Source: Oculina patagonica
Lineage: Eukaryota
NCBI RefSeq assembly: GCF_052425735.1
Contig: NC_135764.1
Span: 10,664,001 to 10,728,000, forward strand
Direction: 5' to 3'
DNA length: 64,000 nt
Below the pieces are notes generated by a model. That model saw only the letters and a list, made by a program, of their open reading frames with translations, was not told the DNA's origin and ran no database searches. A program made the translations under genes and the position numbers. Shown one piece after another: positions 12,877 to 58,308 of the stretch (position 1 is its first letter; each line of letters starts with the position of its first letter).

Positions 12877-12949
12877 ATGAAGACACCATCTGTCTTCGTC
12901 GGGACACTGCTGTTGATTTTTATCAACCTCCAGATCACCGCATCACAGC
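12877..12949 (+). CDS. Gene B first coding exon: signal peptide MKTPSVFVGTLLLIFINLQITASQ (not in ORF track)
   Basis: ATG with purine at -3; in-frame TAA at 12853; basic n-region, hydrophobic core and small-residue c-region; consensus phase-1 donor C|gtaagt. Confidence 0.78.
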
Positions 12950-15900
12950 GTAAGTGACCCTTTGTTTATCGCTGGCACAAGTATTTCTGTCTGAGTAGTT
13001 TATCAATATAATGGCGTAAATTACACACGCGCAAATGTCACTGGCTTTAGAAAACTTTATTCTGTCCTCGTAGATCTAAGCGTCGCATAAAATAAGCTAA
13101 AATATAATCAATACTTCGAGAAACCCGCCATGTTACATCTGGCTGTCAATTAGTGCAGCGGCTTTGTCTATCATTTCTAAAACGGGATTTAAATATGGCG
13201 GCTGTCGCTGTACCCTAGTCACAGAGGTTTTCTTTCCTTTCTTTTCATCACAAACGAATTTCAGCCGCGAAATGGCAAGAACCCACGGTTCGGCGAATTC
13301 TCCTTTCAGTTTAAGAAAATATCTGTGACCGTCGTGTTTCCGCTCTGTCGTGGCTTTCAAATTATAGGACTTTAAAAATAGTAGTGGTGCGTTTAAGAGA
13401 AGACTGAATCCGTGCTTTGAGAGAGATGAAAGAAAGATTTTTTTAATGAACTCGCCTGAGAAAACGGGACCTCACATGCATATTCTTAATTATTGTATGG
13501 CACGATCAGCGGCGTGTATTTACAGTATAAAATACGTAATCCAAAACACCAATGTCACTTTGGACTATGGGAAATGTAATTTCCACAAAGCATAAAACGT
13601 GTCCTGTTCATTAATTGTTGTCGCTGCATTTCTGATGCGTGAAAATCGATGCGTGAAAATCGATCGTGCTCTGCAGTAAATAATTAATTAACATAAATTA
13701 AACAGTCACGCTAGTTTTGGCCCGATTTTAGCAGTTCTGTAAAATACAAATAATTTTTCTTTTAATCGAACAGAACCTACAAAAACAGAAACGATTGAAA
13801 AACGTATACCACATGAAAAAACTGATAAGCCACATGGATGGCCGAAGTTATACAAAATTGTCGAAAGAGATTCGTCATCCACAGTTCGGCCAGTTTAATT
13901 TCGTGTGCGAACCACAGTAAACTGATCGTAAACAAGAATATCCGATTAAAATCTTAGTTTAATATTTTAAGATTCATTAAGCAGTTTTCATTTTCACTCT
14001 AAATTTAGCAACATTGAAAAGCGTTGTATTTTAAGACGTCACCACTTCAACACAAATGCGGTCACGCAATGTTGTGTGACGCGAGGTCATCCCAGCATGG
14101 GATTGAGAGTTGATATCAAGAGTTCTCAAATAAAACTTCTCTGGCATGGAAATTATGATTTTATAGCTTCGGGAAGGCTAAATGTAACTTTTTGTTATTT
14201 TTAATATTCTCTTGAACAGTCATTTCTCCTCTACGAAAAAAGGTCAAGGAGTTAATTAACCGGGTGGCCTGGTTCGAGCCCAGTTCTAAATGCTCGTGTT
14301 TGTTTTTGTAGTTGTTTGTTTGTTTTTTGTTTTGTCTTGTTTTGCTCTGTCTTGTTTTGGGCGGCCTTGGTTGACAAGTTGATCTGGAATATTAAAAATT
14401 AAAATATATTATCATTATCATTGTTATTGTCGTTGTTATTGTTATTTTAAAGCTGATTTCCAGTCCGTACTGCGCAGACTCGGGGTTTGTTTTCGTTTTT
14501 GTTTTGAATTCGTTGAAACGTTACACTTCGGTGACAGCATACATGAAGTTTTTTAGTCCGCCATTACAGTTCGTTTCGTTCAAGGATTTCCGATGAGCTA
14601 AAACGTCGGTTTGAAATAGCGTCAAGGTTCTTCTACTCGTTATTATTTGTTCTGCAAGAATATCTGGCGTTAATAATGAAGAAAAACGTAAGTTTGTCGT
14701 GGAATTTTTAGTTTTGCTTGTAAACATTCCTTCGTGGTGGGCTCGCATAAACATTGCAGCCGAGATTGCGCAGTACGGACTGGAATTCATCTTTAAGCTA
14801 TAAATTATACGGTGAAACTATGAATATATGAAATCATATATTTGAACTGCGGATGAAGAATAAATGAAGAGTTGATCTTCGCAGTCATGAACAGTTCTGT
14901 TCATAACAGCGAAGATCATCTTTTCATTTAAATTATACGGTGTTACATTTTTCCGACAGGTATTTTTTTGCGGGATGGCAGATGCCCAGCAGTTCAAAGG
15001 CGAACTGACTGTCCTACGTACGTGTGGGATGAGTGCACGTGCGACACTGATTGCGCTGGGAAGAAAAAGTGTTGTCTTGATGGATGCAGGCACGCATGTC
15101 TTGACCCAGGTAAATTACTGATGCTTTAAGCTTGGTTGTGCTCTGTGATACTCCCAAACATGTATTCATCAAGCATCTATTGGCCGTTCCGAGGATGCGC
15201 AGGGAACTGGGGCGAGTTTCGAATTTCAAGTAATCGATAATCTGACACCACCATATGAAAGATCGCGATGAGATTGGTGATTTGACTAAGTTTGATGCTT
15301 TCAGGATGCACAGAAACGAAGTTATGGACCTTGAAACATGGTTAAAAATCCATACAAACGTCTCTAATTGTAAGCCAGCGTCCCCCAAAACCATATAAAC
15401 TCTTAAAATTTTTATCTGTTTTGTGACAGCTGTAAAATCCTGCCAAAGACCCATTATTTGAAAGAAACTAAGTTGAAAATCACTATGTTTGCCCATAAGA
15501 TAAGATAAAAGATAAGAAACTTTATTTAAGTGTCAAAGCCATAGCCTGGAAAATAAAACCATACTAAGGGGACAAAACTAAAAGCACACAACTAATTAAA
15601 TACAATAAAAATATATATAGTTATAAAAATGTTATAATAATCTATGGTGTAGAGAGTATCACAAAAATCATAAAAAATTTTAAAAGAGTTTATATGGTTT
15701 TGGGGGACGCTGTCTCAAAATAAGAGACGTTTGTATGGAATTTTAACTATGTTTCAAGACCCATAACTTCATCTCTGTTCATCCCAAAAGCGTCTAACTT
15801 GGTCAAATGACCAATCTCACCGGGTTCTTTTATGTGGTGTGTCAGATTATCGATTACTTGAAATTTGAAACTCGCCCCAGTTTCCTGCGCAACCTCGGAA

Positions 15901-18900
15901 CGGCCAATTCTCCAACAAGCCCAAATTCTTCTCGTGAAAACCCATGAGTCTTCTCATCTCTCTTGTCTGCCTTGATGGCTTAGGAATGTTAACATTAACA
16001 TCCGAATTAAAGCCCTTATTAGCTTCCCTGAGCACTATTCCTACACAACAATAAGTTAAGAAAAGTGTGTATGGGCCTCAGGAATTTTAAGCAGATAATA
16101 TGATGCATTTTGATTGCCATTTACTACCTTTTTACCTTGTTGGAGACGCGGTGGCCTAATGATTAGCGCTCTGTACCTGTATTCCGGATCGAGCAATCCG
16201 GGTTTGAGCCCTGGCATGGGTCATTATGTTTTTGTTTTGGGGCAAGACCCAGTACTCTCATACTTCTTTTCGTCACCAAGATGTATAAATGGGTACCGGC
16301 GAACTTATGCTGGAGGGTGCGATGGACTAGGAGCGGGTAGAAATACCCATCAGGGGTACTAGGTGTAGAAATACTCCTAGGCTCCGGCGGAGTGGGCCAC
16401 TTCGCCTTATCTAACTTCCTTTGCATGGCTACTCTCTTAACTGTGTTGCTTTTCTGTGTTTTTGCCTTCCTCTCTTTTAAGACACGGGGACGCCCTCTGT
16501 CAGAAACAAAGCTGATGTGGTGTTCATAATGGACTCGTCTGGAAGCATCGGGCCGGAGGATTACAACCGCGAAAAGCAATTCGTCAAAGATCTCACGAAT
16601 GTGTTCACAATCTCCCCGACTGCGGCACGAGTCAGCACGATCATATACAGCGACGACCCGAAACTCATGTTCGACTTCGACACTTACAGTGACAAACAAA
16701 GCATTAACACTGCCATTGACAACCTAGAGTATTTAGGCAACAGGACACGAATCGACAAAGCATTGGCACTAGCGCTGGAGGTCTTCTCCAAATCCCGTCC
16801 GTCTGTACCCAGAATCGCCTTTGTCCTCACCGACGGAAAGCAGACAGAAGACTTCGACGCAAAACCGCTGGACGTAGCAGTCCGACCATTGCACGACCTG
16901 GGAGTTCAAGTTTACGTCATCGGGATAGGCATTTATATCGACATCAATGAGTTGTATCTTCTTACCAGGCGACGGCAGGATGTGTTCTTTGTGGACTCCT
17001 TTGAGAAGCTTTTGCAACAAACGTACCGCATTGTTAACCAAATTGATACGTACGGTGAGTTTGAGTGACTGAAGTGTTCTATTTAAGATTCTAGCCATCA
17101 TTATTTATCGTGTTCAACCCCAGGGAGGAAGGGGCACTCAAGAAAGATATACGGGAAGGCCCAGACAGAAAAAGGAATCCTTTCATGTATTTCCGAAGAA
17201 GATAGTAACCCTCAAACATACCTACGAAAGCAACGTTCTTAACGTTCACAATATTTTGAAAGTCTCTATGAGATACATAAATGGAATTTCTCCCCGCCCT
17301 TTTATATACATCACTCCCGGGATGAACCTTTAAGGGATGAAAATGGTTGAGATGGAGGATGAGGAAGGAAAGGGGAAACAACAAAGTGAGACAGGAAGAG
17401 AGGGACAAGAAAAAAGGAACACAATCAAAACACTGTCAGGAAAAGAAGAAAGGGCGCACGCAGGCAAGAGAACAACGCTATGCAGGCACCGAGTTGGATT
17501 ACCGAAAAAGTAGTATTCGCTGCGAATCCAAAGCAAGGTGAGAAGACGACAACCTCCACCAATCAACGAAGAACCTGATAGACGAATGGCGTGACAGTCG
17601 TTGAGGGGCGCACTCTGACGAACACGGACTACATCACACTGTGTGACCGATGACAGACAAGGGAGACGAGGGAAAATATATAGAAAGACCGGAAGGGAAA
17701 GAAAGTTATTCATTAGCGGGAGATTCCAGTTATCGAGGATTCCAGTTATCGAGGGTAAAATTACAGTAAATGTATAACGGAAATCCAGGGGAAATCGATT
17801 TTGGTTCAGTAGTCTGCTGTTTATAGACTGTTTACATCCTCTTTATTTTTAAACGCAAAAGAACGCGCGAGAGAGAACACAGCGAGCGAAGCAAGCGCGA
17901 TTGCAAAGCATAAGAGGGTGGGGCGGGGACCAAGCGTGCGCTGGCGTCCAGTTCTCTCGCCGCCGCTCTTTCCCCGGCGTTTAACGATCGAAGTAAAATT
18001 AAAAAAAAATAGAGGGCTGAGAAAAGTCTGGCTTGTTAAAGCAAGAAGGGACGCCGCCTTAAAATCTTTCCTCCACTTTTCGTCCATAGAAAAATGTTTG
18101 AAACGACCGTTCCATCAAAAAAAATATGCGAATATAAAACGGAAATTAATTGCAAAAGTTGAAATTCTCTCGAGCTTCCTTGAAGTTGAAATAAATCCGT
18201 TTTTCTCTGGGACTTAGTTCAACGCGGAAATTCTATTAAATTTAATCCATCCACGTATTTTCATTGATGCCATTGAGAATTTAGCCTTTAATCGAGATTT
18301 AAGCCGCGTCATTTTCGTTACTTGCGCCTTTGCTTTGAATTAAAAAAATAGAGAAGAGTACGAATGAAAACGTTAATTTCAATTTCAATTGAAAAACATC
18401 GTCTCGATACAAATTCCTCTATTTTGATCTTTGACGAGTACAATAACTTTACCCAGTCTCTATTCTCTTACCACAGATGCAATACCACCGCTGGAAATCG
18501 CAGCCGACATGTTGTTCCTGCTCGATTCTTCCTCAGCTATACCCCGAGAAAATTATGGAAAAGAACTAAGTTTCCTAAAAAAAGTCGTCGGGTTATTCAA
18601 CATATCTCCTCGCTACGTCCGAGCCGGCATAATTCCTTACGGAAACACCGCTGAGCTGTCTATACCACTTGGTAGAGATACAACAAACGAGGCAATCAAT
18701 CGGTCAATTGACTCACTTCCTTACATTGGCGGCAACAAGAGAATCGATCGTGCGCTAATGCTAGCTAACCAGACGTTTTCTCAAGCACGACCATTAGTCC
18801 CTAAGATTTTAGTCATTCACACTCACGGAGGACAGCTGACAGATCCTGGGACCGACTTAAGGCCTCCTATCCAGGCTCTTCGCGCTCAAGGTGTCAGCGT

Positions 18901-21900
18901 ATTCGTAATTCCAATTGGAGAGGGTGTGGATTATTCAAGGCTAAATCAGATTGACGGAAGGAACGATATCATTGCAGACAAGTCTCACGAGTCACTGGAG
19001 CCGTACCTTCCGCCTGCAGCTAGTTATATAAGAGTGAAATCAGGTGAGGTCGATATGGCAGTTATTTACTGAACAGTCAGTAAATAACATCAAAACTTAT
19101 CTCTAGGGATAAACTTAATATGAGCATTAACATAGCTGCTTTTCTTAATTTAGAGACCAAAAGGATGAAAGCTGTTGAGATCGATAAATTAAGATCAGAA
19201 CAGAACATGACGTTATGCACTTTGTATTTATTTACCCCACTGCTTTTCTTCAAAAAATGGAATTACTTTTATGGTCGCTATTTTTGGAGGGTCGTTACTT
19301 TCGGAAGGTTGCAGCTGAACCGTAAGACCCGTGCCCTGCATCTTCACTGTTACGATCAGAAGGGGACTTTAAATAACCCACCACTTATCGCAAAGTGTGA
19401 GCCATGAAGTTCCCGGTGTTGTGGTCTGATCTCGCCTATTGTACTGTCAAGTGTGGGGTGGGAAATTCTCGGAGATATTAGCTAAGGGCGCTTTCCATTA
19501 GACAAAAGTGGCTGGCCGGCTGGCCGGTGAATCTGAATGGAATATAGGCTCACAACAACAGTGAAATATTTATATATTGACTGATTTCACAGGACAAGTC
19601 TGACTAGCAACGGAATTCAGTTCTCGAAAGTAGCTGACCAACCGGTCAGTTCTGACTAATAGAAAGCGCCCAAATAAAGTGTTCATATCATATCATTCAT
19701 ATACAAAACAATCGTTAAAATAGATTGCTACTCTGGGGATTCGTTACCTCGGCTGAACTTTACGGTGAGTCGCTTTTTCATGTCTAAAGGTTACCATTTT
19801 GTTTTAATTTGACAGACTTTTCAACTCCTTTGAGTAAAGACGCTGCCGTTGTCTTCCTGATAGACTCCTCTGAGGAAGTAGAGTCGAACGACTTCAAGAG
19901 ACAGAGAGAGTTTGTGGTATCCTTAGCAAAAGCCTTTAAGATTTCTGAAAATGGAGTTCGCGGAAGTGTTATTACATACGGCAAATACGCCCGGCCAAGT
20001 GCGCAATTCAAAGACTCTACAAATTTTGATGAATTTCTGGAAGCAACAGTAAGAACCAGCCGAATAAAAGGACCAAGGAGGATGGACACGGCGTTGCAAA
20101 TGGCTGTCCGCATGTTCAGAGATCACGAAAAACCTGCACCAAGAGCAGTCATATTATTCACGTCAGGGCCACAAAAAACCGATCTTGACCAACTAGAAGA
20201 AGCTAGGAAAAAGCTCGAAAAATTGGGCGCGCGAATCTACGTCATTGCCATTGGCCCTTCAGTTGTCTACCTTGACGTTGCGAGACTGGTGAACAGTTCT
20301 AGCGATGTCATACAGGTTCCTTCGTTTATCGATTTACAGTCTGAGATTCATGCAGTTGGGAGGCACGTGAGCCTAAGACAAGGTAAGCAACGTAGATTAG
20401 TCTATGTTATGGACATGTTAAACGAGGCAATTTCCTTCGCGACATTCTCGTCACCAGAGCCGCTCGTCCCTCTCAGCCGGCAAAGCCTGGGGCACGGGGG
20501 AACAAGTTCCTCTGGGGCCACATGATTTGTTTGGCTAGGTCTTTAACAAAGGACATTTAAATTTAGCAAATCAAATCAACCGTTCCAAAATCCTTTTGTT
20601 GTGAGTGATTTTACTACGGTTGATTTGATTGGCTAGATTTAAATTCTAATTGTTAAAAATCTATCAAAAATGAAACCATGTGTCCCCATAGCCACTTGTT
20701 CCTTGAGCCCCAGACTCATCCGGCCAAAAGGGACAAGCTGGTCTGGGGACAAGAATGGACATGAAACGAAACAAACACTGCATTGACATTTGCAAAAAAA
20801 ATTCACGTGTAACACTTCATGTTTGCAACCTGCAATGCAACATTTCGTGTTGGAAATTGCAAGACAAGTAGAACTATTCAGGACAAGTTACTGCCTGTTA
20901 CACCTGTCCTGTTGGCCTTAATTTTTGTTCTTTTTTCACTAGGTCACCTTAATTAGTGACTGCATGAGTTGTAATATCAGCAACATTGACCGTTTTTTAT
21001 TTACGCTTTGCGAAATATGGGTATTTTTTGTTGCTGACACTGAATTACTCCTAATTTCTATATTTTGACGGTAGCGATTCCCAATAAAAGAGCCAGCGTC
21101 ATTAAACAACTAAATAGATAATTACACTATCGCCAAGCATGTATAGCTTTTGAGATCACCAGCAAAATGAATGAGTTTTTCCCAAACTCACAGTAGCGTT
21201 TTGATGACAGCATAATAGTCTATATAGTCTATATTGCTTTTTTGGTAGTTTTGCATGCTTTACAATTTTTATTGTGTAGGATTTGCAAAATAGCAAACAC
21301 GAAGAAGGCTTCGCCCGACACCCAGTCTCCAGTTTGTTCTCTAATCTGTATCAAAATGTTAGATTTCTACAACATCGTCTTTATATACTTTTTTTTTGTT
21401 TTTTTTATTTAACCCTCAGGAGATACAGCGACCCTTTTTATAGCCGATGTTGTGTTCCTAATGGATTCGTCCGTGGGTGTTGGCAGTGCAAACTACAGAA
21501 GGCAGAAGGATTTCGTCAAAGCTGTCGCACGGGCCTTGAACTTCGGAGAGCGAGCCACCAGGGCCTCACTAGTAGTCTACAGCAGTAACCCGAGGCTGAT
21601 AACCAGATTCGACAGCCACACGACCCTGAGGCAGTTCGAAGCCGCCGTGGACAGGGCGTCTTATTTACGCGGCACGCGGCGTATCGACAAAGCACTGGCA
21701 TACGCAGCTCGAATGTTTACCGCAGCAAGATCGGGTGTTCCTAAAGTTATGGTGCTCATTACATCCGGGAGACGAGATTCCGTCAATCCTCTTGACGTTG
21801 CTAGTATACCGCTAAAGAATATTGGCGCGAAGTCATTCATCGTCGCCATTGGTTCTTTACCAGACATAAGAGCCTTGCGGTTGATTGTCAGCGGGAATAA

Positions 21901-24900
21901 AGACATCTTTAGAGTGCCGTCTTTCCTCAGTCTTTCTCAAATAGAAAAATCGTTTCCGCAGTACATAATCTCTTCATTTGGTAAGTGAGAAAGGTAATTT
22001 AACTAAATTTAATTTAATTTTGAATTTAAAGGATCAAAGATCGGGGCAATATGAAATTGCTTTGCCATTTAGAATTGTTATGTTGTGGCCGTTTAATTCT
22101 CTACCGATCAAAACCTAGTTTCCCCAGGGTCAGACAGGCAGGTTACGGCAAAACAGAAAAGGGGATATTGTCTCAATGTATCAACAAATTCTTTAAACTT
22201 AAAGTGAAAGAAATTAATGTTTTCCTTCGAGAAGAATTAAAACTTTGAGCGCGAGTAAACACATGGTCAGTTTTTTATAAAACACAAGGATCGAGGAAAC
22301 TGTTGAACGTATAATAACTCAGTCATGAGCTAAATGGGTTTTCATATTTGTTTCATAGACTCCACCGTACCCACTACAAAGCCAACGCCGACTACAGGTA
22401 TAACGCCCTCTACAGGTACAGAGTCCCCTACAGGTACCGCGTCCCCTGTAAGGACAACAAACGTAAACGCAGACATCATTTTCCTGATGGATTCATCTCA
22501 AACTGTCACACCAGAAGCTTATCGGAAGGAGAAATCTTTCATCAAGGAAATGGCTAGACACTTAAACGTGTCCCCTGGCCAATCACGCGCTGCCCTGATC
22601 ACTTACGGTTCCACGGCTTCAACAGTCGATACTTTTGGAAATACGCGATTTGATGAGTCGGTTGACCGGGCTCGATCCATGTCTGGTGCTCGAAGAATAG
22701 ACCAAGCCCTGCTAGAGGCAGTACAACTGCTTTCCTCTGCTCGACCATCTGTTCCTAAACTGGTGGTACTGTTAACGGCGGGAAACCAGCAGTCAGGCGC
22801 ACAGTCTCCAGAGTATGCTGCCAGACGGATCCAGTCTCGTGGCGGGAAATCTTTTGTTGTTATGGTTGGCCGTGAGCCCGATGAAAATGAGTTTTATAAA
22901 ATAGTAGAGAAACCTTCAGATGCGTTCAGAGTTCCTTCATTTGATGGGATCCAACCATATGCTGCTCCGTTGTCAAAAGGAATTGAGGAAAGCCTAAAGG
23001 AAGGTTAGTTAGGGGAGAAATGAACCAGACTATGCTTTCATAACGTAACTGAGAACTTCGTGGTGAAAAGGCTTATTTTGTAATGTTTATTTATAGTTGA
23101 AGTTAAGTTGTATTTAACGCACGCTGTCAATGGTTGTTTTTTGGTTACGTTGCCATGACCATGTATCCTGCAGTGGGAACCATTCAGCTTGGGTGGGTCT
23201 AATACTTGTCCTTTTTATTTGTAAATTTGTTGCTATATATCTAAGCACTTTATCACTGGTTCATTTTGAATATAGTTAGTTTTGTATTTAGGTCTCCGGA
23301 GTCTTCCTCTACCATATTTCAGTTAATATCATGCCATAACCACTTACTGGGGAGTATCCGCTTCAACTCAAAGTGTTCTCTTCATTATGTTAAATGATAT
23401 TCAAAGCTTTCTTGATCGCAAACCAAAAAAATTAAGAGGACACTTTTCCAATCAGAAAATAATGGGTGATGACCAAAGCCACTTAGAATACCGCGTTTAT
23501 TACTTCGAGTAAAGGAACAACATCCACAAGGAGGACAATTAGGTGCAATTCCTAAGGCAAAACGTTCCACTATACTTAAAATATAGGGATGTACCATGTC
23601 GCCAACAGGTTGTTGTATTACTCTTATTGCAGGCCCTGAAGCCTCAGACATCATTGCGGATGTAGTATTTGTAATGGATTCTTCTTTCACCGTGCCTCGC
23701 GACGACTACAGGAAGGAGAAGGAGTTTGTCAAGTATCTCGCCAGATATCTCAACGTTTCACCGGGGAATTCTCGCGCAGCGCTTATTACCTACGGCAACA
23801 GGGCGGCTGAGGTGGTAGGCTTCGACATCAAACGGTCTGTGTCAGACTTCGAGACTGCTGTAGACAAAGCTCCATTTGTTAGCGGTGACAGACGCATCGA
23901 TCGATCTCTTGACAAGACCTCTCAAATAATGGCCAACGCCAGGCAATCGGCGACGAAGATAGTCGTGTTGTTGACCTCCGGAAAACAAGCCTCGGCGTTC
24001 GGCAGCAAGACTCCTGGTGAAGCGGCAATTCCTCTTCGAGAAGGCGAAGTTTACAGCTATGTTGTAGCAATAGGTCAAGAACCTGACATCTCGGAACTTC
24101 GTCCTGTGGTGCAAGAATCATCGCATATTTTCAGAATGGCTACGTTTGGTGATTTAGAGCCTCGCCGGACGACGGTTGGTCAGATCATTGTCGAAACATC
24201 GAGTAAGTTCTGTCAGTATATTTCTGCGCTGGTTTTCAATGGCCATAAACAAAAGCATAAGGAATGTACAAGCATAAGCATGATCACGAGCATAAGAATA
24301 AGCATAAGCATGCATACCCTGGGTGCCAGAGGGTTTTTACATTTTGTAGGAAAAACAAATAGTTCATTATATAAACATCAGTGAAATACCAGGAAATCTT
24401 TCGCACGAAAAAATCATATCTTCACACGTGAAAATAACATGTTTTATTTTTTTCCAAGAGGGCACGGTAACGAATCCTGCAATCTGATTGGTTATTAGCG
24501 CGGGCAAGATTCTCCTATCTCTGCCCACGGGCCACGGTAACGCTTTCGTGAGTTTCATTTCGCGGCGAGACGAACGAACCCATGACAGTTTTGCTCTCCA
24601 AAATGATTTAAATCGATGTAGTTGCTCACCAACCGTTGTAAATGTGAAAGGGAAAATTAGCAGTGGAATTAAAGGCCTTGAAGTTTTCCAAAAGGCGAGT
24701 ATTTATTCTCTTTAGTGACAAAATGAAGTTATAGTTTTATGGCCGTGGTTTGCCGATCGTTGTTTGTGCATTCGCACTGATTTTCACGCCATTGCGGTTA
24801 ACTGCAAGTCGCCGGTTTACAGACTCGATTTATCCTTTCAAACACCTTGCTTCTCTGCTACTTTTCTCCAAAACCGAATACTGCTTATCGCCATTCAAGA

Positions 24901-50815: not shown

Positions 50816-53800
50816 AAAATCCGCGCGAGGCCAATTGTAATTACGAGCACGATTAGTCTCTTTATTACACATTGTAGTCACTAGCTGTCTTCTCATTGGT
50901 TAAAGGGGCTACGTCACGAGGTTTTAGTATATTTTTTTTCCAAACTCTTCTGTAATTGGTGGGAGGCAATTTTACCCATGGAAATATTTTTCTTTGAATA
51001 TATAAAAGAAGATACAAAAGTATTTTTTTGTGAGGGATCAAATCACGCCGAAAATTTTTTTTTTTTTTAAGCCCCCCCCANNNNNNNNNNNNNNNNNNNN
51101 NNNNNNNNNNNNNNNNNNNNNNNNNNNNNNNNNNNNNNNNNNNNNNNNNNNNNNNNNNNNNNNNNNNNNNNNNNNNNNNNNNNNNNNNNNNNNNNNNNNN
51201 NNNNNNNNNNNNNNNNNNNNNNNNNNNNNNNNNNNNNNNNNNNNNNNNNNNACAAAACTTCCACTTTTTTTCCCCCCCACCAAATAATTAAATAAACTAA
51301 AATTTTTTTTTTTTCAAAAACCACCCCAAATATGAATTGTACTACACGAGGTCCAATTACTAATTAATGGTATGAATATCAAAATACGAGGTTAGGAAGT
51401 CTTTGAGAACCTTTTTTTGTGAGAAAAAGCGAAAGGTAGATTCAATTGCTTGTACAAAAAGTAGGGAAACAGCAAAACAAAAACATTCAAATGCGCGAGA
51501 TTGACGCGCGAATGGCGTAGGTGTCCAATTTCAAGTATCCAATTTGAAGTTGCTCTAATTGGATACCTGTAATTGGACACCCACGTGATCGCGCACCGAT
51601 TACGCGACAATAATTATTAGGCGCGCGCAGAACCAATCAAAATCGAGAATTTTGTTATAGATACGATTATAAATTATATACCTTTCTTAATTCTGTAATA
51701 AGCCAATTCAATTGCATAAGTGGTTTTGTGCAGGACTAATGCATTCTTTGTCGTGATCAATATACGAAAAGGTGGTGTCGCTTTTTCCTAGTGATACTGA
51801 GTCAGTTGTATAATATCTTCTAGTAATGGTTTGAAGTAAACTTTAGATGATTCCGGTTTAAATTTTACCTTCCATTTTTTTAGATTCTAAACCTGCGGAT
51901 AAAGATCAAGTAAACGTCATATTCCTACTGGATACTTCCACGGGCGTCACTCGTAGCGATTTTGGAAAACAAAAAGACTTCGTCAAGGCCATGACTCGGT
52001 CATTTCAACTCCCCCTTAGTGAATCAAAGATGGCTGCTGTTCCATACGGTGCTTTTACTGCGACATCAGGAAAATTGAATACGTACCAGTCCCTGAATGA
52101 ATTTGACAGGGATGTTGATGCAGTACAACTAATAAGTGGGCAAAGGAGGATGGATGAAGCCTTGAACGCTGCCAGCAATGTGCTTCGACAAGACAGGTCA
52201 CCGGTCCGTAATATTGTCATTCTGCTGACTGCCGGAAGACAAGCTCGGCTGTATCAAGGCCAACCTGTGAGGGATTCCAGCAAGGACGTCAGGGACGTCG
52301 GCGCCGAAATCTATGTCGTGACAATTGGCAGTGAACCGAGTCTTGACGAGCTTAGGCCCATTACTGCAAATCCAGAAGACATTTACCAAGTTGGCTCCTT
52401 CGATTATCTTCAGCGTGAAGCGCAGCCCATTGGACATGATATTATTAACAGTAAGTGGCACAGACGTTTTCAATGTGTTTTATTGATCCTTCCCTATTAA
52501 CTTAAATTCCCCCTTCAAAGTCTTTTTACAAGTGAACATGGGTATTTTACAGACGAATGGTCGTTTTTGTTGTTATTGTTTGTTTGTTTGGGTTGAGCAT
52601 TTTAAAATTCTCGTCTTCCGGAATTCCTGTTTTATGCAACAGCTGGCTAATTCCCCAATTTTGGGCTAACCATTAGTAATTGTTTTTTCTAGTTGTTGTT
52701 GTTATTGTTACCGGTTTTTAGTTGTACATCTTTATTATTTGGTGAAACTTGATTATTCACATTTATGTCTTATCAGATACCGGACGCCTGTCACTTACGC
52801 AACACAAGTAAAATGGCCCAGCTCACAACGAGTTCGTAGCTCAATTGGTTAGAGCAACCAACCTGTGTGTTTGAGGCCTTGGGTTACGATTTCCGTCGGG
52901 GACTCAGAATTTTTCTTTGTCCCAACAATTGTGTCAATATATACTTCATCTTCAATAGATAATCAATCTAAAATGGACAAGTAAAAAGAAATGCTGTACG
53001 GGAAAGACGGGAAACAAATCCTGGTTAAAGGGCGTTTAAAATATTTATTGTTACTATAAATGAGAAAAAAATTGTTGGTAACATCTGGCAAATGTTTATT
53101 TTTTATTCTATATTTTTGTCATTAGGTGGTGCATACAGACCGTTTGACGTAACTGCTGACATTGTCTTCATGGTAGACTCTTCGGGCTTAGTCGGGAACG
53201 AAAATTATCAAAAAGAGAAGGAGCTCGTTAAATCCTTAGCACGACTTGTTAATGTCACTTCTGAAAAATCAAGAGTAGCTGTCATTGCGTACAGCAGATC
53301 ACCCATCCTTGTTGTACGATTTGATGGTTACAATTCATTAGGCGAGTTTGACAAGAAAGTGGAAGAGATGCCCTTGCTTGGAGGTTCGTCGAGGCGCATG
53401 GATATTGCCTTGCAGACCGCTGCTCAAGTATTAAACACTGCTAGACAACATGTTCCAAAGATCGCAGTCTTGCTGACGGCAGGAAGGCAAATACCTGGTG
53501 GGATTTCACTCAGCACTGCCACCCAACAGCTTCGAAGTTTAAATGCTACTACCCTGGTGGTAGCTATAGGACAACAATACGATAAACAAGAACTGAGCAC
53601 TATTGTTACTGAGCAAGAAGACTTATTCGAAATACCTTCTTTCAATGCGCTAGCGTCACGTGCTAGGACGATTGGACAAGCAATAGAGGAGAAGTCAGGT
53701 AACGTATGTACATTAATCGTGCAAAAGACTAAGTTTTTGTAAAACCACGCCACAGTTTTAAAATACTTCTCAAAAGAGCATGATGCCGGCTGATCTTTTG

Positions 53801-56800
53801 GAAATCAACCGAATGTTTTATCCGTATGTTGGTTTTCAAACATAAAAGATTACTAGTGTGGTAAATGCTGGACATAAATTGGTGTCCAATTTTAAAACTA
53901 TTATCTAGCACAGACCAGGCCCACAAATTAGTGTAAAATCAGTCAAAGGCTAGTCAGTTAGAAAAGAGCTTCTTTATCTCAGCTTCCGATTTTTGACGGA
54001 TTTACAGGTTTAGTTATAGAAAAGTCCATTGATTTGAGTTTATTTGTTTCATTGCTTGAAGCTGGTAACGTAGTTGTTTATTTGTTTTTCTTCTGAAGCT
54101 CCAAAACCAGAGGACATAATAGCCGATGTTGTTTTCTTGGTTGACTCCTCCAGTAATGTGACATCACTCAACTTCCAGTTGGAAAAGAAGTTTGTGAAGG
54201 CCATGGCCAGGTCTTTAAACGTGTCTCCTGACAAGTCTAGAGCGTCTGTCATTTTGTACGGGTCCAAGCATAACGTCGTGCTGTCACTGGGAGAGGCTAC
54301 CGACTTGGATGGTTTCAACCGTGCTGTAGACAGTGCAAGTTATGTCGATGGACCGCGTAGAATGGACTTAGCTTTGGAGGCAGCAGCAGCCGTAATGAAC
54401 CAGGCAACGAGGAATGTTCCAAAGATTGTGATCCTTTTGACATCTGGGAAACAGTCGCCTACTAATACACCATTCCCATTGAGTAGTGCTGTGAAGCCGT
54501 TACGTGATCTCGGAGCTCAGACTTACGTCGTTGCTATCAGCGGTGAGCCAGATAAGCAAGAACTCGTTACTGTGGTGGATGACCGAAAGGACATATTTGA
54601 AGTGCCACAGTTTGAAGAATTATTGCCGCAAGCAACGCAGATCGCAAAATCAATTGCCGGAAGATCAGGTAAGGTTTCTGGTATTAACTCATTTTAAGAT
54701 ATTTCTTGATATTGCTCTTAGCATTTTACACCAGGTCCACAAACCTCGTCAAAAGTGTTTGCATGATCACCAAATTTCTCTCTCCCTCTCCTCCCTCCTC
54801 CCCGTGTCAATACTGAGCTCTCAAACATATTGCACAAAACAATCCCTATCCACGAGGGGTCCAACATTTTAAAGGGGAGGAGAACCTGCAAGAACGTTTG
54901 TATGCGACGTTGACCAAGTTTAAGTGTAAAGTATCTTTGTTCGCGTCGTTTAATGGTGTGCGATCTAGCTACTTTTTTCTACGCTTGAATGTTCTCAAGG
55001 CTCTTCGAATGTTCTTTCATCTAAAAGATGCAAAAATCAGAAGCGCTTAATTTCGCAGGATATACAAGATAACAACATACACTTCTTATTTAGTTCAAAC
55101 TTAAATAATTTTGCGGAAAATTATTAACCATTGATTGACGTCCTAAATGAATAATCTTTACTTGTTCAGTTGCACGCTCGCCGAAACTTCTTTTCCATCC
55201 CGCAGATCAACAGCCGCTAGACATAGACGCTGACATTGTGTTCCTGATAGACGCTTCTAGCTTCGTAACTCGGGACAACTTAATTAAAGAGAAGGACTTT
55301 GTCAAGTCCCTGGCCAAGTTCCTGAATATGGCGCCTGAAGCCTCAAGAGCTGCTCTGGTTCTCTTTGGCACCTTGCCTAATACGGAGATAAAATTCAATG
55401 ACTACCGTACTTTACGTGACTTTAATGACCGTGTTGACCTGGCCCGGGCACTTGGTGGTTTCCGGCGAATGGATCGTGCTTTAGACGAGGCCGCTAATGT
55501 ACTAGCTGACAAAAGGCGGGGCGTGCCACATATTGTTGTGCTTGTTACATCGGGAAAACAATCACGAAGTGAAGACGGCATTCCGCTTGATGACGCGCTC
55601 GATCCTTTAGAAAAACTAGGAGCTTATACTTTCGTTGTTGCTATTGGACATGATCCGGATACTTCGACACATGTGCTATCTGTACCCTCCTTTGATTGAC
55701 CTTCCATCTCGAGTTTACGGCATGGCAAAGCAAATCAAGAGCACTAGTGGTATGTACAGAGACATTTTGTTAGTAAATAACATGCAGTCGTGTTTGTGGC
55801 TGGATTCTTGTTTGTTTCGAAAACCGAACAGTTTAAGGAGTTCAGTTCAACTAACTCTGTGAGCTTTCTAAAGCTCCTTAAAAGGAACAGGCTATGTCCA
55901 GGAGCAAATACCAGTAAATATTACAATTTCAGTTCTTCTGTCAGTTATTACTTTTTTTGTAATTTTTATCTTTATTATTCGCCAGCAAACTTTTGTTTTG
56001 ACCTTTAAACCTTCCTCTACCATCTTTTTTTTCTACCTTTAAACCTTATTTGAATAATTTACCACAAGTAGATATAGATAAAAATCCTAATAACCATTTT
56101 TAAAAAGTTAGTAATGAAACTCTGTTTTCCAGGTTTGATAAGGTAAAGGTGGTGAAAAACGAGGACACAATGTTCCGAATACATTGATACGAACAAAAAT
56201 GTTTTCCCGTTTGCCTGCACTAGCAACATTTGTCGCGGACACAAAATTTGTCTCCTAGACACATCATCCGATTTCCGTCAGAAACACTTTGTGTCCACAA
56301 CAAATGTTTCCCCGTTTGCGCGGCATGGACACAAAACATTTGTTTTGTGTACCGCTCGTTTAATCACCCAAGAAACATCATGAGCAACAACGTATCGGCA
56401 ACAATGTGTTCTCTTTTGCCACCACCTTAAAGTGCGGCTTAAAAAACATTAATGATACTTTTCTCCACTACCCCGGCCTTAAAATGTCTTGATTTTTGTT
56501 TCACGTTTTTTGCTTTTTTTTGTGGAGGAAAGGGTCATTGGGTTTGTTGGTCGATTCTCGCTTGTCAGTGGGCACTTTCAAAGGTCAACATTTGTCACGT
56601 TAATTTGTCACCTTTAAAATAATCCCAATACTTACAACCACCCGGATTTGTCGGGTAAAGAATATTAACCAAAAACAAATCTTTTTCCGTGCATTCGTAT
56701 TAGCGGTTTTGTAAACGAGTACTTTTCTTTACTGGTACCATTTTTCTTACAATGTGAAAATGCTTCCACTTTTATCTATTTTTTCAGAGCCAAAACCAGC

Positions 56801-58308
56801 AAACATCACAGCTGACATTATATTCCTTATGGATTCTTCAACCTCTGTTGGACGAGAAGGCTTTGGCAAGGAAAAGAGTTTTGTGAAATCTTTGGCAAAG
56901 TATTTCAACGTCTCACCAGGGAAATCCAGAGCTGCTGTTGTCTCGTACAGCAGTTTTGCTCGCACTGTTCTTAAGTTCACTGACTACCAATCCGAAACCG
57001 ATTATAATGACAAGCTTGATAAGGAGCCATGGGTCGGAGGCAGCCGACGTATAGATCGTGCTCTTGAGGCGGCAGATACGTTACTGAGCCAAGCGCGTTC
57101 AAAGGTTCCGAAAATCGTTGTCCTAGTCACAGCCGGAAGACAAACGACCAGTGTTGGTGCTACCCCATTGGGAATAGCTGCCCAACCACTCAAAGATATT
57201 GGAGCTAAGACCATTGTTATAACGGTTGGAAGCGAAGCAGATCACAGAAATCTGCTTCCGGTGGTGGACAGTATGAACGACATATTTGGTGCACCTCTAT
57301 TTGATGACCTTCGCTATGAGGTGCAGCCAGTCGTTAAATACACTGTTGAACATTTTGGTGAGTTGAACGAAACATGATCACTGATATCAATAGCATTAGG
57401 TTTGTAATGCGGAGTTACAAGTATTTTGTCGTGATAGAGAGGAAGGGCACTGTACCGAACCTCGAAGAACACGATTACTGTCATTTTCACCCCGAGGAAT
57501 CAGCCGAACCACCTAAGCCAACACAGCGTTGGAAAAGCCTTTTTTTTTATAGTTTTCACACCTGTTAATGAGATTTGTTTTTATTCAAATGCAACCGGCA
57601 AAGAGTTATAACTACACCTTTGGTCGACGTTTTGTCATCTAAATTAACACAAAATCGTCAAAAAGGGTTACCATTTTTCAATGGTATGCGTAATATGATT
57701 TATTTCTTATGTTAATGTCTTCTGTTTTTCTGTTTAAGAATCGCCGATTCACAATATCACTTCAGAAGTGGTCTTCATTTTGGACGCTTCAACACCGGTT
57801 GGAAAACAAAACTTTGACAAAGAAAAGGCATTTGTCAAACTCTTGGCCAGGTCTCTAAACGTCTCTCCTGGAAACTCAAGAGCAGCTATTATAACATACA
57901 GCACGAACCCATTCACGGTCATACCGCTGGGCGGATACAGCACTGTTCAAGAATTTGAGCGAATCTTAGATGCCATAGAGGTCTATGGAGGCGATAGGAG
58001 AATGGATCGAGCGTTGAAAGAGGCGGTCGGTTTGTTTCAGAAAGCAAGACCTGGTGTTGATAGAAAGGTCATCCTGCTGACCGCTGGGAACCAGAACGTG
58101 GGCGACGATGAAGAACCTTTAGATAAAATAAAGAAAATGCTCCTTGATGTTGGTGCTCTGCCGTTCATCGTTGCCATAGGGGAAGACCATGACATTCCAA
58201 CACTCACAACAGCTGTTGAAGACCCGAAAGACATTTTTGAAGTTCCATCATTCGATGACTTGCTGTCTCAAGTTTCGTCAACAGCCGCAGTAGTTGCGAA
58301 CAGAACAA
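12877..58308 (+). CDS. Gene B (spliced, 3'-partial): giant secreted protein, signal peptide-WAP-(VWA)x28+, about 5,400 aa seen
   Basis: 32 exons joined by GT-AG introns with compatible phases; apparent frameshifts in the VWA22 and VWA26 exons; the last exon ends in a donor, so the gene continues. Confidence 0.82.
14451..14792. mobile_element. TTAA-flanked MITE, copy 2 (inverted relative to copy 1, internally deleted)
   Basis: Same TIRs and internal sequence as 9204-9660 in reverse; TTAA on both sides. Confidence 0.85.
14815..14928. mobile_element. Short hairpin-containing insertion with 14-bp TSD
   Basis: taaattatacggtg at 14801-14814 and 14929-14942; internal palindrome atgaagagttgatcttcgc...gcgaagatcatcttttcat. 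Confidence 0.72.
14960..15109 (+). CDS. Gene B exon: WAP domain, 9 Cys (not in ORF track)
   Basis: ccgacag| ... G|gtaaat, 150 nt; DGRCPAVQRRTDCPTYVWDECTCDTDCAGKKKCCLDGCRHACLDP. Confidence 0.9.
15179..15908. mobile_element. Foldback/MITE with ~240-bp inverted arms
   Basis: 15179-15416 is the reverse complement of ~15670-15908. Confidence 0.8.
16141..16400 (+). mobile_element. tRNA-derived SINE; related reverse copies at ~7215-7490 and ~30160-30375
   Basis: A-box-like gtggcctaatga and B-box-like gggtttgagccc, followed by shared body (ttggggcaagac...ctctca). Confidence 0.6.
16482..17054 (+). CDS. Gene B VWA1 (intact MIDAS)
   Basis: phase 1-1; DSSGS, NRTRID, LTDG. Confidence 0.92.
17824..18030. 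mobile_element. MITE
   Basis: tagactgtttacatcctctttattttt / aaaaatagagggctgagaaaagtctg. Confidence 0.5.
18477..19043 (+). CDS. Gene B VWA2
   Basis: ccacag| ... G|gtgagg; degenerate MIDAS. Confidence 0.9.
19486..19671. mobile_element. PIF/Harbinger-like MITE
   Basis: TIR gggcgctttccattag / ctaatagaaagcgccc; TAA on the left. Confidence 0.6.
19816..20382 (+). CDS. Gene B VWA3
   Basis: tgacag| ... G|gtaagc. Confidence 0.9.
20443..20757. mobile_element. MITE
   Basis: TIR cattctcgtcaccaga / tctggggacaagaatg with further internal symmetry. Confidence 0.6.
21420..21980 (+). CDS. Gene B VWA4
   Basis: cctcag| ... G|gtaagt. Confidence 0.9.
22359..23003 (+). CDS. Gene B T/P linker + VWA5
   Basis: tcatag| ... 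G|gttagt; STVPTTKPTPTTGITPSTG linker. Confidence 0.9.
23633..24202 (+). CDS. Gene B VWA6
   Basis: ttgcag| ... A|gtaagt. Confidence 0.9.
24365..26066 (-). mobile_element. Terminal-hairpin non-autonomous element (hairpin 25914-26066), interrupted by another
   Basis: Long palindrome; IR attatataaac (24366-24376) / gtttatataat (25901-25911); internal ttcggaaa tandem repeats. Confidence 0.72.
24442..25618 (-). mobile_element. Terminal-hairpin non-autonomous element (hairpin 25461-25616)
   Basis: Long palindrome; perfect 13-bp IR 24443-24455 / 25449-25461. Confidence 0.75.
26786..27361 (+). CDS. Gene B VWA7
   Basis: ttttag| ... G|gtaact. Confidence 0.9.
28012..28590 (+). CDS. Gene B VWA8
   Basis: cctaag| ... 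G|gtacca. Confidence 0.87.
29004..29258 (+). CDS. Gene B VWA9 N-half
   Basis: atttag| ... G|gtaaga (internal phase-1 intron). Confidence 0.88.
29653..29961 (+). CDS. Gene B VWA9 C-half
   Basis: atgtag| GSRRIDKAL ... G|gtgaga. Confidence 0.88.
30501..30533. repeat. (TGT)n microsatellite
   Basis: Direct reading. Confidence 0.95.
30591..30958 (+). CDS. Gene B VWA10 N-part
   Basis: tcctag| ... GAG|gtaaga (phase 0). Confidence 0.88.
31459..31669 (+). CDS. Gene B VWA10 C-part
   Basis: tcacag|GAA ... G|gtaaga. Confidence 0.88.
32422..32973 (+). CDS. Gene B VWA11
   Basis: ttttag| ... C|gtaagt. Confidence 0.9.
33329..33883 (+). CDS. Gene B VWA12
   Basis: ttttag| ... G|gtgaga. Confidence 0.9.
34113..34191. 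repeat. (CAGA)n microsatellite
   Basis: Direct reading. Confidence 0.95.
34486..35067 (+). CDS. Gene B VWA13
   Basis: ttccag| ... G|gtgcgt. Confidence 0.9.
35390..37250 (-). mobile_element. 5'-truncated L1/Tx1-type LINE (RT C-terminus + zinc knuckle, frameshifted) with 14-bp TSD
   Basis: Protein similar to the C-half of ORF2 at 59177; -1 frameshift near 35958; short A-tail; flanks gccccgcaacgtat (35376-35389) and gccccgcaaggtat (37251-37264). Confidence 0.9.
37746..38291 (+). CDS. Gene B VWA14
   Basis: ctgcag| ... G|gtaagt. Confidence 0.9.
39181..39798. repeat. ~210-bp inverted repeat (foldback DNA-transposon remnant)
   Basis: ttttaatttttttacccgtcacttagtcacaacggttaccatagc... and its reverse complement ending at 39798. 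Confidence 0.8.
39937..40515 (+). CDS. Gene B VWA15
   Basis: caatag| ... G|gtaagt. Confidence 0.9.
40881..41186 (+). mobile_element. Terminal-hairpin element Y (hairpin 40884-40994)
   Basis: Palindrome with GCGAAGC tip; IR 40996-41014 / 41167-41186. Confidence 0.75.
41187..41719 (+). mobile_element. Terminal-hairpin element X', complete copy (hairpin 41191-41374)
   Basis: Palindrome with GCGAAGC tip; IR 41377-41400 / 41696-41719. Confidence 0.8.
42695..43261 (+). CDS. Gene B VWA16 (alternative in-frame acceptor at 42707)
   Basis: tccaag| or taacag| ... G|gtttgt. Confidence 0.85.
43688..44251 (+). CDS. Gene B VWA17
   Basis: tcgcag| ... G|gtttgt. Confidence 0.9.
44669..45232 (+). CDS. Gene B VWA18
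   Basis: aatcag| ... A|gtaggt. Confidence 0.88.
45863..46432 (+). CDS. Gene B VWA19
   Basis: ttgcag| ... G|gtgaga. Confidence 0.9.
47371..47937 (+). CDS. Gene B VWA20
   Basis: ttgcag| ... G|gtacgt. Confidence 0.9.
48434..49012 (+). CDS. Gene B VWA21
   Basis: attcag| ... G|gtgagt. Confidence 0.9.
49062..49440. repeat. Degenerate ~137-bp inverted repeat with a hammerhead-like motif in each arm
   Basis: 49062-49198 is the reverse complement of 49304-49440; motifs CTGACGA-A-GGCT..AGCC-aAAA-CGTC (-) and CTcATGA-A-GGCT..AGCC-GAAA-CGTC (+). Confidence 0.75.
50005..50581 (+). CDS. Gene B VWA22, with +1 frameshift near 50490-50492
   Basis: 577 nt (3n+1); the domain continues in another frame (KKPEDVLKVSKFDDL...NKTG); splice sites intact. 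Confidence 0.75.
50759..51670 (+). mobile_element. Degenerate terminal-hairpin element, interrupted and spanning the gap
   Basis: tagtaattggacc...gtacaattca pairs with tgaattgtac...ggtccaattacta (51333-51362); distal ccaatcaaaatcg motif. Confidence 0.5.
51081..51251. other. Assembly gap (171 N) with homopolymer-rich, low-quality-looking flanks
   Basis: N run. Confidence 1.
51884..52450 (+). CDS. Gene B VWA23
   Basis: ttttag| DSKPADKDQVNVIFLLDTSTG ... A|gtaagt. Confidence 0.9.
52830..52955 (+). mobile_element. tRNA-derived SINE remnant
   Basis: tagctcaattggttagagc ... gggttacgatttcc; no complete cloverleaf. Confidence 0.55.
53126..53698 (+). CDS. Gene B VWA24
   Basis: cattag| ... G|gtaacg. 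Confidence 0.9.
54099..54668 (+). CDS. Gene B VWA25 (alternative in-frame acceptor at 54111)
   Basis: ctgaag| ... G|gtaagg. Confidence 0.85.
55206..55749 (+). CDS. Gene B VWA26, with a ~9-codon deletion and +1 frameshift/stop at 55697
   Basis: 544 nt (3n+1); PDTS-THVLSVPSFD* then DLPSRVYGMAKQIKSTSG in the next frame; splice sites intact. Confidence 0.7.
56147..56427. mobile_element. MITE (TAA-flanked, Harbinger-like)
   Basis: aggtggtgaaaaacgaggacacaatgt / acaatgtgttctcttttgccaccacct; TAA on both sides. Confidence 0.6.
56788..57357 (+). CDS. Gene B VWA27
   Basis: tttcag| ... G|gtgagt. Confidence 0.9.
57739..58308 (+). CDS. Gene B VWA28
   Basis: tttaag| ... A|gtaagt. Confidence 0.9.

Follow-up and report, generated by a model that had tools for sequence, protein, structure and literature searches.

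The poly-VWA locus of Oculina patagonica is a single 44-exon gene of about 65 kb on the + strand, which begins inside the window (the whole 64,000-nt stretch of DNA that we analysed) and extends beyond it. The analysis supports a secreted, beads-on-a-string protein without a collagen helix as its product and, judged by sequence, the gene is the ortholog of the Nematostella gene annotated as 'collagen alpha-3(VI) chain'. The predicted product has a length of about 7,105 aa (about 778 kDa) and consists of a signal peptide, a WAP domain with nine cysteines and 37 VWA domains, with no other domain. It belongs to a known kind of matrix protein, of which it is a very large representative, and does not define a new kind.

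A local HMM map placed the VWA domains V1 to V37 consecutively on one strand. An earlier note on this DNA had described a signal peptide, one WAP and 28 or more VWA domains, about 5,400 aa and still open. All these elements were found at the positions given there, all 28 VWA domains in the window match PF00092, and the conceptual translation is 5,399 residues long where V28 ends, with the frame continuing downstream. The full count is, however, 37, as nine further VWA domains lie 3′ of the window. The C-terminus, which the note had proposed to inspect, holds these nine domains followed by a TAG stop about 13.5 kb downstream of the window, and no collagen exons. The features are the following, in window coordinates:

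12877–12949, + strand: exon 1, start codon and 24-aa signal peptide MKTPSVFVGTLLLIFINLQITASQ, phase-1 donor GTAAGT; N-terminus collinear with Nematostella P0151
14960–15109, + strand: exon 2, WAP four-disulfide-core with 9 Cys (extra one in the C3-C4 loop); PF00095, 41.7 bits; same 9-Cys pattern in P0151
16482–17054, + strand: V1, complete MIDAS (DSSGS..T..TDG), Cys-free; HMM, 59% identity to Nematostella V1, PDB integrin I domain matches
18477–19043, + strand: V2 VWA exon, incomplete MIDAS, Cys-free; HMM map and splice ends
19816–20382, + strand: V3 VWA exon
21420–21980, + strand: V4 VWA exon
22359–23003, + strand: V5 VWA exon, 31-aa Thr/Pro-rich linker at its start
23633–24202, + strand: V6 VWA exon
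26786–27361, + strand: V7 VWA exon
28012–28590, + strand: V8 VWA exon
29004–29258, + strand: V9, first half; a phase-1 intron interrupts the domain
29653–29961, + strand: V9, second half
30591–30958, + strand: V10, first part; a phase-0 intron interrupts the domain
31459–31669, + strand: V10, second part
32422–32973, + strand: V11 VWA exon
33329–33883, + strand: V12 VWA exon
34486–35067, + strand: V13 VWA exon
37746–38291, + strand: V14 VWA exon
39937–40515, + strand: V15 VWA exon
42695–43261, + strand: V16 VWA exon
43688–44251, + strand: V17 VWA exon
44669–45232, + strand: V18 VWA exon
45863–46432, + strand: V19 VWA exon
47371–47937, + strand: V20 VWA exon
48434–49012, + strand: V21 VWA exon
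50005–50581, + strand: V22 VWA exon of 577 nt, whose reference sequence has a 1-nt frameshift near 50494; RNA contig start at 50004/50005
51081–51251, no strand: assembly gap (N) in the V22/V23 intron, between high-copy repeats; DNA depth to either side about 10^3-fold that of single-copy sequence, both neighbouring exons in phase 1
51884–52450, + strand: V23 VWA exon; RNA contig coverage
53126–53698, + strand: V24 VWA exon; GT..AG joint 53698/54099 in X1, X2 and X7
54099–54668, + strand: V25 VWA exon, classic VWA fold; AF2 model, pLDDT 95.8
55206–55749, + strand: V26 VWA exon, 544 nt, in-frame loss of 9 aa in the alpha6 region; joint 54668/55206, contigs end at donor 55749
56788–57357, + strand: V27 VWA exon
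57739–58308, + strand: V28 VWA exon, last inside the window
64615–77556 (window-equivalent), + strand: V29–V37 (loci L003–L004); stop TAG at 77554–77556

Every exon has AG/GT ends, and 40 of the 43 introns are in phase 1. The lengths of exons holding a whole domain are multiples of 3 except in V22 and V26, each of which carries a 1-nt indel; within the window V9 and V10 are each split by an additional intron. The linkers between VWA domains are short and Pro-rich, as previously noted, with 0–6 residues and 26% Pro versus 4.9% Pro overall, and the only exception is the 31-aa Thr/Pro linker preceding V5. The junctions V22/V23 (across the assembly gap) and V28/V29 (across a 6.3-kb LINE-bearing intron) as well as the 5′ and 3′ ends are predicted from phase logic and orthology.

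PF00092 matched all 31 open frames scanned, three of them from gene A (best E 1.2e-33), and the WAP exon matched PF00095 with E 1.4e-10 (score cut-off 20.8), its cysteines being the eight canonical ones plus the extra one. The AF2 model of V25 (pTM 0.92) shows a Rossmann-like alpha/beta VWA fold, with TM scores of 0.83–0.87 to VWF A3 and collagen VI alpha-3 N5. These two domains and the mussel protein PTMP1 are the closest to V25 in the PDB, and integrin I domains were matched by the sequence of V1 and not by that of V25.

Cysteines in the product are restricted to residues 33–71 (WAP) and to residues 6918 and 7103 (V37). The Cys-free run between them has 6,846 aa, and V1–V36 do not contain any Cys, in agreement with the reported absence of Cys from the part of the array in the window (V1–V28). 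All five MIDAS residues (DxSxS...T...D) are present only in V1 and V37 of the 37 domains; in V2–V36 the second Ser is absent, Thr is replaced by Arg, or Asp by Ala, Ser or Gly. The earlier note had set the array against gene A, whose VWA domains it described as clamped by Cys pairs. The gene does lie beside disulfide-clamped, MIDAS-complete paralogs: in gene A, all four VWA domains in the window have an N-terminal and a C-terminal Cys, together with MIDAS residues. The contrast is right for V1–V36, which are unclamped, but not for the last domain, since V37 combines a complete MIDAS with an N/C Cys clamp and the protein ends 2 aa past the clamp Cys. Because the last VWA is also MIDAS-complete and clamped, both ends of the protein look, from their sequence, like binding modules.

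Comparison with Nematostella showed that the N-terminal 460 aa are collinear with residues 44–492 of P0151 (3,720 aa) at 43% identity, and that the C-terminal 566 aa align to residues 3157–3718 at 33% identity, both proteins having just 2 aa beyond their last Cys. P0151 has the same order of a signal peptide, a 9-Cys WAP, a V1 with MIDAS, a Cys-free run without MIDAS and a clamped last VWA with MIDAS, and as in the coral its MIDAS is complete in the first and last VWA only. Collinear termini, a single 9-Cys WAP, MIDAS at both ends and the terminal clamp place the two proteins in one hexacorallian WAP-polyVWA orthogroup. They differ in the number of VWA domains, which is 19 in P0151 or 18 in P0001 (XP_048579525.1, 3,534 aa; the two are listed as isoforms X2/X4) versus 37 in the coral, and the inner domains do not correspond one-to-one, with best cross-species identities of 30–44%. 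The Pfam and ortholog searches proposed earlier thus recovered PF00092, PF00095 and an ortholog already annotated in RefSeq. Its collagen name is automatic and the protein has no collagen helix (no PF01391); the label 'collagen VI alpha-3' is misleading for the cnidarian relatives, since these lack a triple helix.

We also considered that the gene encodes a true collagen VI chain, with triple-helical exons lying elsewhere or missed. The relatives carry the database names 'collagen alpha-3(VI)' and 'alpha-6(VI)', and among solved structures collagen VI alpha-3 gives the best match in both sequence and fold. However, no Gly-X-Y run of at least 6 was found in any frame across 164 kb around the window, which extends the earlier observation that the window has no such stretch. 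The product has no PF01391 helix, no post-helix VWA and no Cys-rich junction, and its frame runs only 2 aa past the V37 clamp Cys before the stop, the very arrangement seen in the Nematostella ortholog, so that we regard this explanation as hardly credible. Collagen VI chains combine a Gly-X-Y helix with C-terminal VWA and, in many cases, a Kunitz domain, whereas the coral protein has none of these and a WAP head instead.

The likeness to collagen VI lies in the N-terminal arm of the vertebrate alpha-3 chain (human COL6A3; PDB 9han_C, 4igi, 6snk), which is a tandem array of Cys-free, MIDAS-incomplete VWA domains with 24–28% identity to the coral domains. We compared the arrays using fish, shark and trout models, the coral exons being phase 1-1 with one domain each; COL6A3 likewise has one domain per exon. 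Fish collagen VI alpha-3 shows Cys-free, MIDAS-poor arrays of 20–29 VWA domains, and the teleost col6a3 models P0186 and P0187 have 29 and 27 VWA domains with Cys-free stretches of 4,300–4,800 aa. The figure of about 12 VWA domains, against which the coral array had been contrasted, holds for human but not for these teleost models. Given the similar arrays in fish, the size and Cys-free state of the coral protein are less exceptional than first thought.

To examine expression and integrity, we used RNA samples (runs X1, X2 and X7) and a DNA run (X17). Contigs of the three RNA runs cover exons and are absent from unique intron bins, while X17 covers the introns, and the ends of RNA contigs coincide with predicted exon borders. 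The possibility that the locus is untranscribed is contradicted by these exon-only contigs from three samples. Two GT..AG joints were seen directly, V24-V25 (53698/54099) and V25-V26 (54668/55206), and the tested part of the gene is transcribed and spliced with consecutive exons joined. Of the 38 exon variants with the best support, 22 are synonymous and 16 non-synonymous (p 1.6e-5, with 25% expected to be synonymous), and the gene is under purifying selection.

Could the VWA exons be cassettes, with much shorter isoforms as the usual products and the 37-domain protein made rarely or never? Each phase 1-1 exon could be skipped in frame, alternative splicing of the N-terminal VWA exons, including exon skipping, is established for vertebrate COL6A3, and the Nematostella RefSeq isoforms (3,720 and 3,534 aa) differ by exactly one VWA. 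On the other hand, RNA contigs join the neighbours V24-V25-V26, a 1,631-nt contig extends 1,374 nt past the V26 donor, a distance exceeding the combined length of V27 and V28, and no skipping joint is among those listed for the RNA runs. Moreover, all 37 domains are open and have diverged under constraint. We therefore consider this explanation unlikely. As to the earlier concern that the exons serve only as alternatives in short isoforms, V24-V25-V26 are spliced together, and the phases do permit skipping; because of these symmetric exons and the Nematostella isoforms, the 37-domain form may be one of several.

The reference carries two 1-nt frameshifts, in V22 (near 50494) and V26 (55696/55697), which raises the question of whether the locus is decaying, either as a pseudogene or as a gene truncated after V21. 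The extra T in V26 is found only in the reference and is absent from every contig of all four runs. In V22, some of the depth in X1 and X17 comes from a version that is one letter shorter at 50494 and restores the frame, but the reference-like allele is also present in other samples and accounts for about half of the depth in one RNA-like and one DNA run, so the truncating allele may be real. Decay of the locus nevertheless seems very improbable to us, as the 21.3 kb of coding sequence has no stop besides the effect of the two frameshift exons, synonymous changes are in excess, and the gene is spliced and expressed downstream of V22.

Regarding function, we rather favour a model in which the secreted 37-VWA protein as a whole is a tether or shock absorber with two binding ends. 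By analogy with VWF A3, integrin I domains and mussel PTMP1, the V1 and V37 ends would bind a matrix ligand such as collagen in a metal-dependent manner, and the odd WAP Cys could provide a covalent link or dimer. The 35 inner domains would form an inert, closely packed spacer of about 150–190 nm; lacking a clamp, they would be reached by tension and could unfold in succession, in the manner of VWF A2. In this way the protein would serve as a long tether or shock absorber in the extracellular matrix, in mesoglea or cnidocyst matrix. Both its extensibility and its tissue of action we infer. V25 models on VWF A3 (TM 0.86), V37 has an N/C Cys pair of the A1/A3 type and V1–V36 are unclamped like A2, but force sensing by A2 has an experimental basis, and its sequence identity to the coral domains is about 19–20%. 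PTMP1 (proximal thread matrix protein 1 of mussel byssus, PDB 4cn8), from an extensible extracellular fibre matrix, also has VWA domains in tandem and ranks second among the PDB sequence matches of both V1 and V25; it has two VWA domains only and belongs to an unrelated lineage, so the resemblance is at the level of domains.

The combination of WAP with VWA is known from secreted cnidarian matrix proteins, namely Hydra Hcol3 and NvvWFA-WAP (NV2.11346), the latter without a triple helix (PMC12549020). These have alternating or repeated WAP and VWA domains and many Cys, unlike the coral protein with its single WAP and long Cys-free run. The same study, which gives the only expression lead from a relative, offers a different site of action, in which the coral protein would be a cnidocyte-made structural component of the stinging capsule or tubule and not a mesoglea, skeleton or mucus protein. 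NvPolyvWFA (NV2.8635), a 'vWFA domain repeat protein' with human COL6A3 as best Swiss-Prot hit, marks early and nematocyte-lineage cnidocytes (43–62% of cells versus about 1% elsewhere; PMC12549020). By elimination P0151 is the likeliest candidate for NvPolyvWFA, because it has a single WAP and 19 VWA domains, whereas P0157 (at least 7 WAP signatures, 167 Cys) and P0158 (also 7 WAP signatures) fit NvvWFA-WAP. However, no minicollagen-type propeptide follows the coral signal peptide, and NvPolyvWFA was quantified in mesoglea preparations too (PMC12549020); we regard a capsule origin as a serious but less likely possibility. In the skeleton proteome of O. patagonica, coadhesin-type VWA proteins are listed and the poly-VWA protein is not among them.

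The result is a clean and verified gene model for a protein whose 37 domains place it among the largest VWA-repeat proteins seen to date. Its MIDAS and Cys residues occur only at the two ends, a polarity conserved from sea anemone to stony coral, which yields a testable statement on which parts bind and which span or absorb force. A bolder and quite unlikely reading is that hexacorals keep two sticky ends and an inert extensible spacer, with the number of inner VWA domains (19 in the anemone, 37 in the coral) setting the reach or the energy absorption of a tether. Only the terminal VWAs would then bind, through MIDAS, clamp and the free WAP thiol, and the tether might sit in the stinging capsule, where other structural proteins are cross-linked via cysteines. 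The finding also has a bearing on how vertebrate collagen VI alpha-3 came by its Cys-free N-terminal arm, as cnidarians possess a poly-VWA gene in the same style that lacks collagen.

A scan of the window (GC content about 40 %, eukaryotic DNA) for the VWA strand-1 motif gave 31 matches, all of them on the + strand. Gene A, upstream, accounts for three of them; the other 28 belong to the poly-VWA gene B and lie between 16.5 and 57.8 kb. All 31 open frames matched the Pfam VWA family PF00092, with a best E value of 1.2e-33. The earlier note had counted at least 28 VWA domains in gene B and left it open downstream. We added 100 kb of sequence around the window, applied the same VWA HMM there and found nine more domains at window-equivalent positions 64.6-77.5 kb, followed by a stop codon, which completes the array at 37 domains (V1-V37). 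The HMM matched nothing for 20 kb beyond 77.5 kb, after which the next cysteine-rich VWA gene starts. AATAAA signals are located 3′ of the stop codon at 78167 and 78317. The features of gene B referred to below are as follows.

12877-12949, + strand: exon 1, start codon and 24-aa signal peptide, then a GTAAGT donor
14960-15109, + strand: exon 2, WAP domain with nine Cys (PF00095, 41.7 bits)
51081-51251: run of N (assembly gap) inside the V22/V23 intron (donor 50581, acceptor 51884)
77554-77556 (window-equivalent), + strand: stop codon TAG

The gene model consists of 44 exons, all AG/GT-ended, separated by 43 introns, 40 of them in phase 1. Nearly every VWA unit has a single acceptor preceded by a good pyrimidine tract and a single strong donor, both in phase 1, and one extra intron interrupts each of V9, V10, V33, V36 and V37. 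The lengths of whole-domain exons are multiples of three except for V22 (577 nt) and V26 (544 nt). Some introns carry mobile elements: a LINE-type retrotransposon ORF (endonuclease, RVT_1, zf-RVT) of 1,237 aa without stops lies on the - strand of the V28/V29 intron (59180-62890), and a zf-RVT fragment on the - strand of the V13/V14 intron (35956-37353). An element of about 80 nt (58311-58390) starts directly after the V28 donor and has at least 39 further genomic copies with 80-88 % identity.

Four sequencing runs were compared with the window. Runs X1, X2 and X7, which carry three organism labels, cover the exons and show zero depth in unique intron bins (e.g. 53870-54063 and 54840-55033), whereas X17 covers the same bins at single-copy depth; by this, X17 is DNA-like, and X1, X2 and X7 are RNA-like. 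The GT..AG joints 53698|54099 and 54668|55206 were recovered in X1, X2 and X7 with exactly the predicted borders, and contigs start or end at 50004/50005, 53126 and 55749. One contig of 1,631 nt crosses the V26 donor and goes on for another 1,374 nt, which is longer than V27 and V28 combined and fits a transcript running on into V29. Given the exon-only depth and the two predicted joints in these three runs, gene B is transcribed, and the silent locus that the earlier note had named among the results that would count against it was not what we found. The 38 exon differences with the best support comprise 22 synonymous and 16 non-synonymous ones (binomial p 1.6e-5 against 25 % synonymous); purifying selection acts on the inner domains of gene B.

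The odd lengths of the V22 and V26 exons are due to insertions of 1 nt each, and both frame breaks were bridged with X in the conceptual translation. The extra T at 55696/55697 in V26 is missing from all contigs of all four runs and is therefore private to the assembly or an error. At 50494, where the indel sets the V22 reading frame, a one-letter-shorter, frame-restoring form accounts for about 40-50 % of the depth in both X1 and X17, so both forms may segregate and the longer one may be a truncating allele. An X2 contig across this site also has one gap. The assembly gap lies between a donor and an acceptor both in phase 1, and the frame is thus independent of it. The assembly broke here because of high-copy repeats on either side, where X17 depth reaches 35,000-80,000 vs about 66-80 on unique sequence. 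Depth of X17 at about a thousand-fold the single-copy level was seen in three intronic stretches, 50766-50959, 51348-51735 and 52706-53093, the first two of which flank the gap. DNA joints over 50.8-51.3 kb stem from these high-copy repeats and are not specific for bridging the gap; no RNA joint V22|V23 spanning it was among the joints listed, and the gap may hide an exon.

The predicted product has 7,105 aa (mature form about 778 kDa, pI 8.2) with its 37 VWA domains spaced at about 188 aa. The linkers are Pro-rich and 0-6 residues long; the sole long one is a Thr/Pro-rich, mucin-like stretch of 31 aa before V5, encoded by the start of the V5 exon (22359-22451) and probably a site of O-glycosylation. 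In the alpha6 region (55640-55700), V26 is nine residues shorter than every other domain, an in-frame difference. Cysteines are confined to residues 33-71 (WAP), 6918 and 7103, which leaves a Cys-free run of 6,846 aa (residues 72-6917); their total of 11 is odd. Cys 6918 and 7103 bracket V37 at the positions of the VWF A1/A3 clamp. Gly-X-Y runs of six or more were absent from all six frames of the 164 kb examined, so a collagen reading of gene B was ruled out, and the earlier statement that the window holds no such stretch now extends well beyond it.

An exhaustive phmmer search with V25 returned as best match, in 18 matched stretches, a 3,534-aa protein of Nematostella vectensis (XP_048579525.1, 'collagen alpha-3(VI) chain isoform X4'), of which isoform X2 (3,720 aa) is longer by exactly one VWA. 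Residues 5-460 of the coral protein are collinear with 44-492 of this ortholog at 43 % identity, the nine-Cys WAP included, and the C-terminal 566 aa are 33 % identical to 3157-3718, with the last Cys two residues before the end in both. Domains pair as V1-V1 (59 %), V36-V18 and V37-V19 (coral first); the inner domains show no one-to-one correspondence. Within the coral protein, identity between domains averages 35 % and none exceeds 50 %, by which recent tandem duplication was ruled out; the array is old, with no recent expansion. Full-length scleractinian orthologs were not found in a word-indexed search with the Nematostella N- and C-terminal queries among proteins of up to 6,185 and 6,510 aa, likely because both ranges end below 7,105 aa. 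Corals gave only paralogs there: P0153 of Acropora cervicornis (84 Cys), P0154 of Pocillopora and P0156 of Oculina. The last, annotated 'SCO-spondin-like', is on the same chromosome, whether or not within the gene cluster described below, and eight of its nine VWA domains keep the full MIDAS.

We read the five MIDAS positions (DxSxS, T, D) from one HMM alignment of all domains. All five are retained by the first and the last domain alone: V1 and V37 in the coral protein, V1 and V19 in the Nematostella ortholog. In the inner domains the second Ser is missing, Thr is replaced by Arg, and Asp by Ala, Ser or Gly. V1 matches integrin I domains among solved structures, whereas V25 has no such match; its AF2 model (pLDDT 95.8) superposes on VWF A3 (TM 0.86), collagen VI alpha-3 N5 (26 % identity) and mussel PTMP1.

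In the 164 kb that include the window, the VWA HMM matched 80 times, always on the + strand (window-equivalent -18.7 kb to +136 kb). This pattern suggests a gene cluster with several VWA-rich members in tandem, of which the upstream ones and those at 97.9-136 kb are rich in cysteine. The WAP of the gene A region (5113-5247) has the canonical 8 Cys within the exon, vs 9 in gene B. Domains there come in the order three VWA, WAP, one VWA, and the label 'gene A' may thus cover two or more genes.

Arms of vertebrate collagen VI alpha-3 are typically Cys-free arrays of MIDAS-incomplete VWA domains. In fish, col6a3 models contain 22 to 29 VWA domains, with Cys-free stretches reaching 4,812 aa, and a shark protein has 20 with zero Cys. 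The giant Cys-free array described in the earlier note is real and extends further downstream, but its unusualness was overstated. The coral protein nevertheless exceeds these arrays in size, with 37 domains and a 6,846-aa Cys-free run, and differs from collagen VI alpha-3 in lacking the helix and in carrying a WAP at its head and a binding-type domain at each end. It is a new, very large representative of an already known kind of protein; the interpretation given in the note holds only in part.

As to the place of action, the Nematostella matrisome contains a 'WAP and vWFA' protein without collagen and NvPolyvWFA (NV2.8635), a 'vWFA domain repeat protein' that strongly marks cnidocytes and was also quantified in mesoglea preparations (PMC12549020). 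P0157 and P0158, with seven WAP signatures each, fit the former entry, so NvPolyvWFA, a name that the literature searched contains in this paper only, is the likeliest candidate identity of the single-WAP ortholog. A skeleton-matrix reading of gene B found no support; a poly-VWA protein is absent from the skeletal proteome supplements of O. patagonica, where the VWA proteins are of the coadhesin type, VWA+TSP1+F5/8C (PMC9532382).

The architecture, polarity, expression and constraint of gene B are shown by the data above; the mechanism is a proposal. The protein would bind at both ends, through MIDAS, clamp and an unpaired WAP Cys, in a matrix that may be mesoglea or cnidocyst. The 35 inner VWA domains would serve as a spacer of roughly 150-190 nm. 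The A2 domain of VWF unfolds under tension; with no clamp on the inner domains, tension would reach them too, and they could unfold sequentially in the same way.
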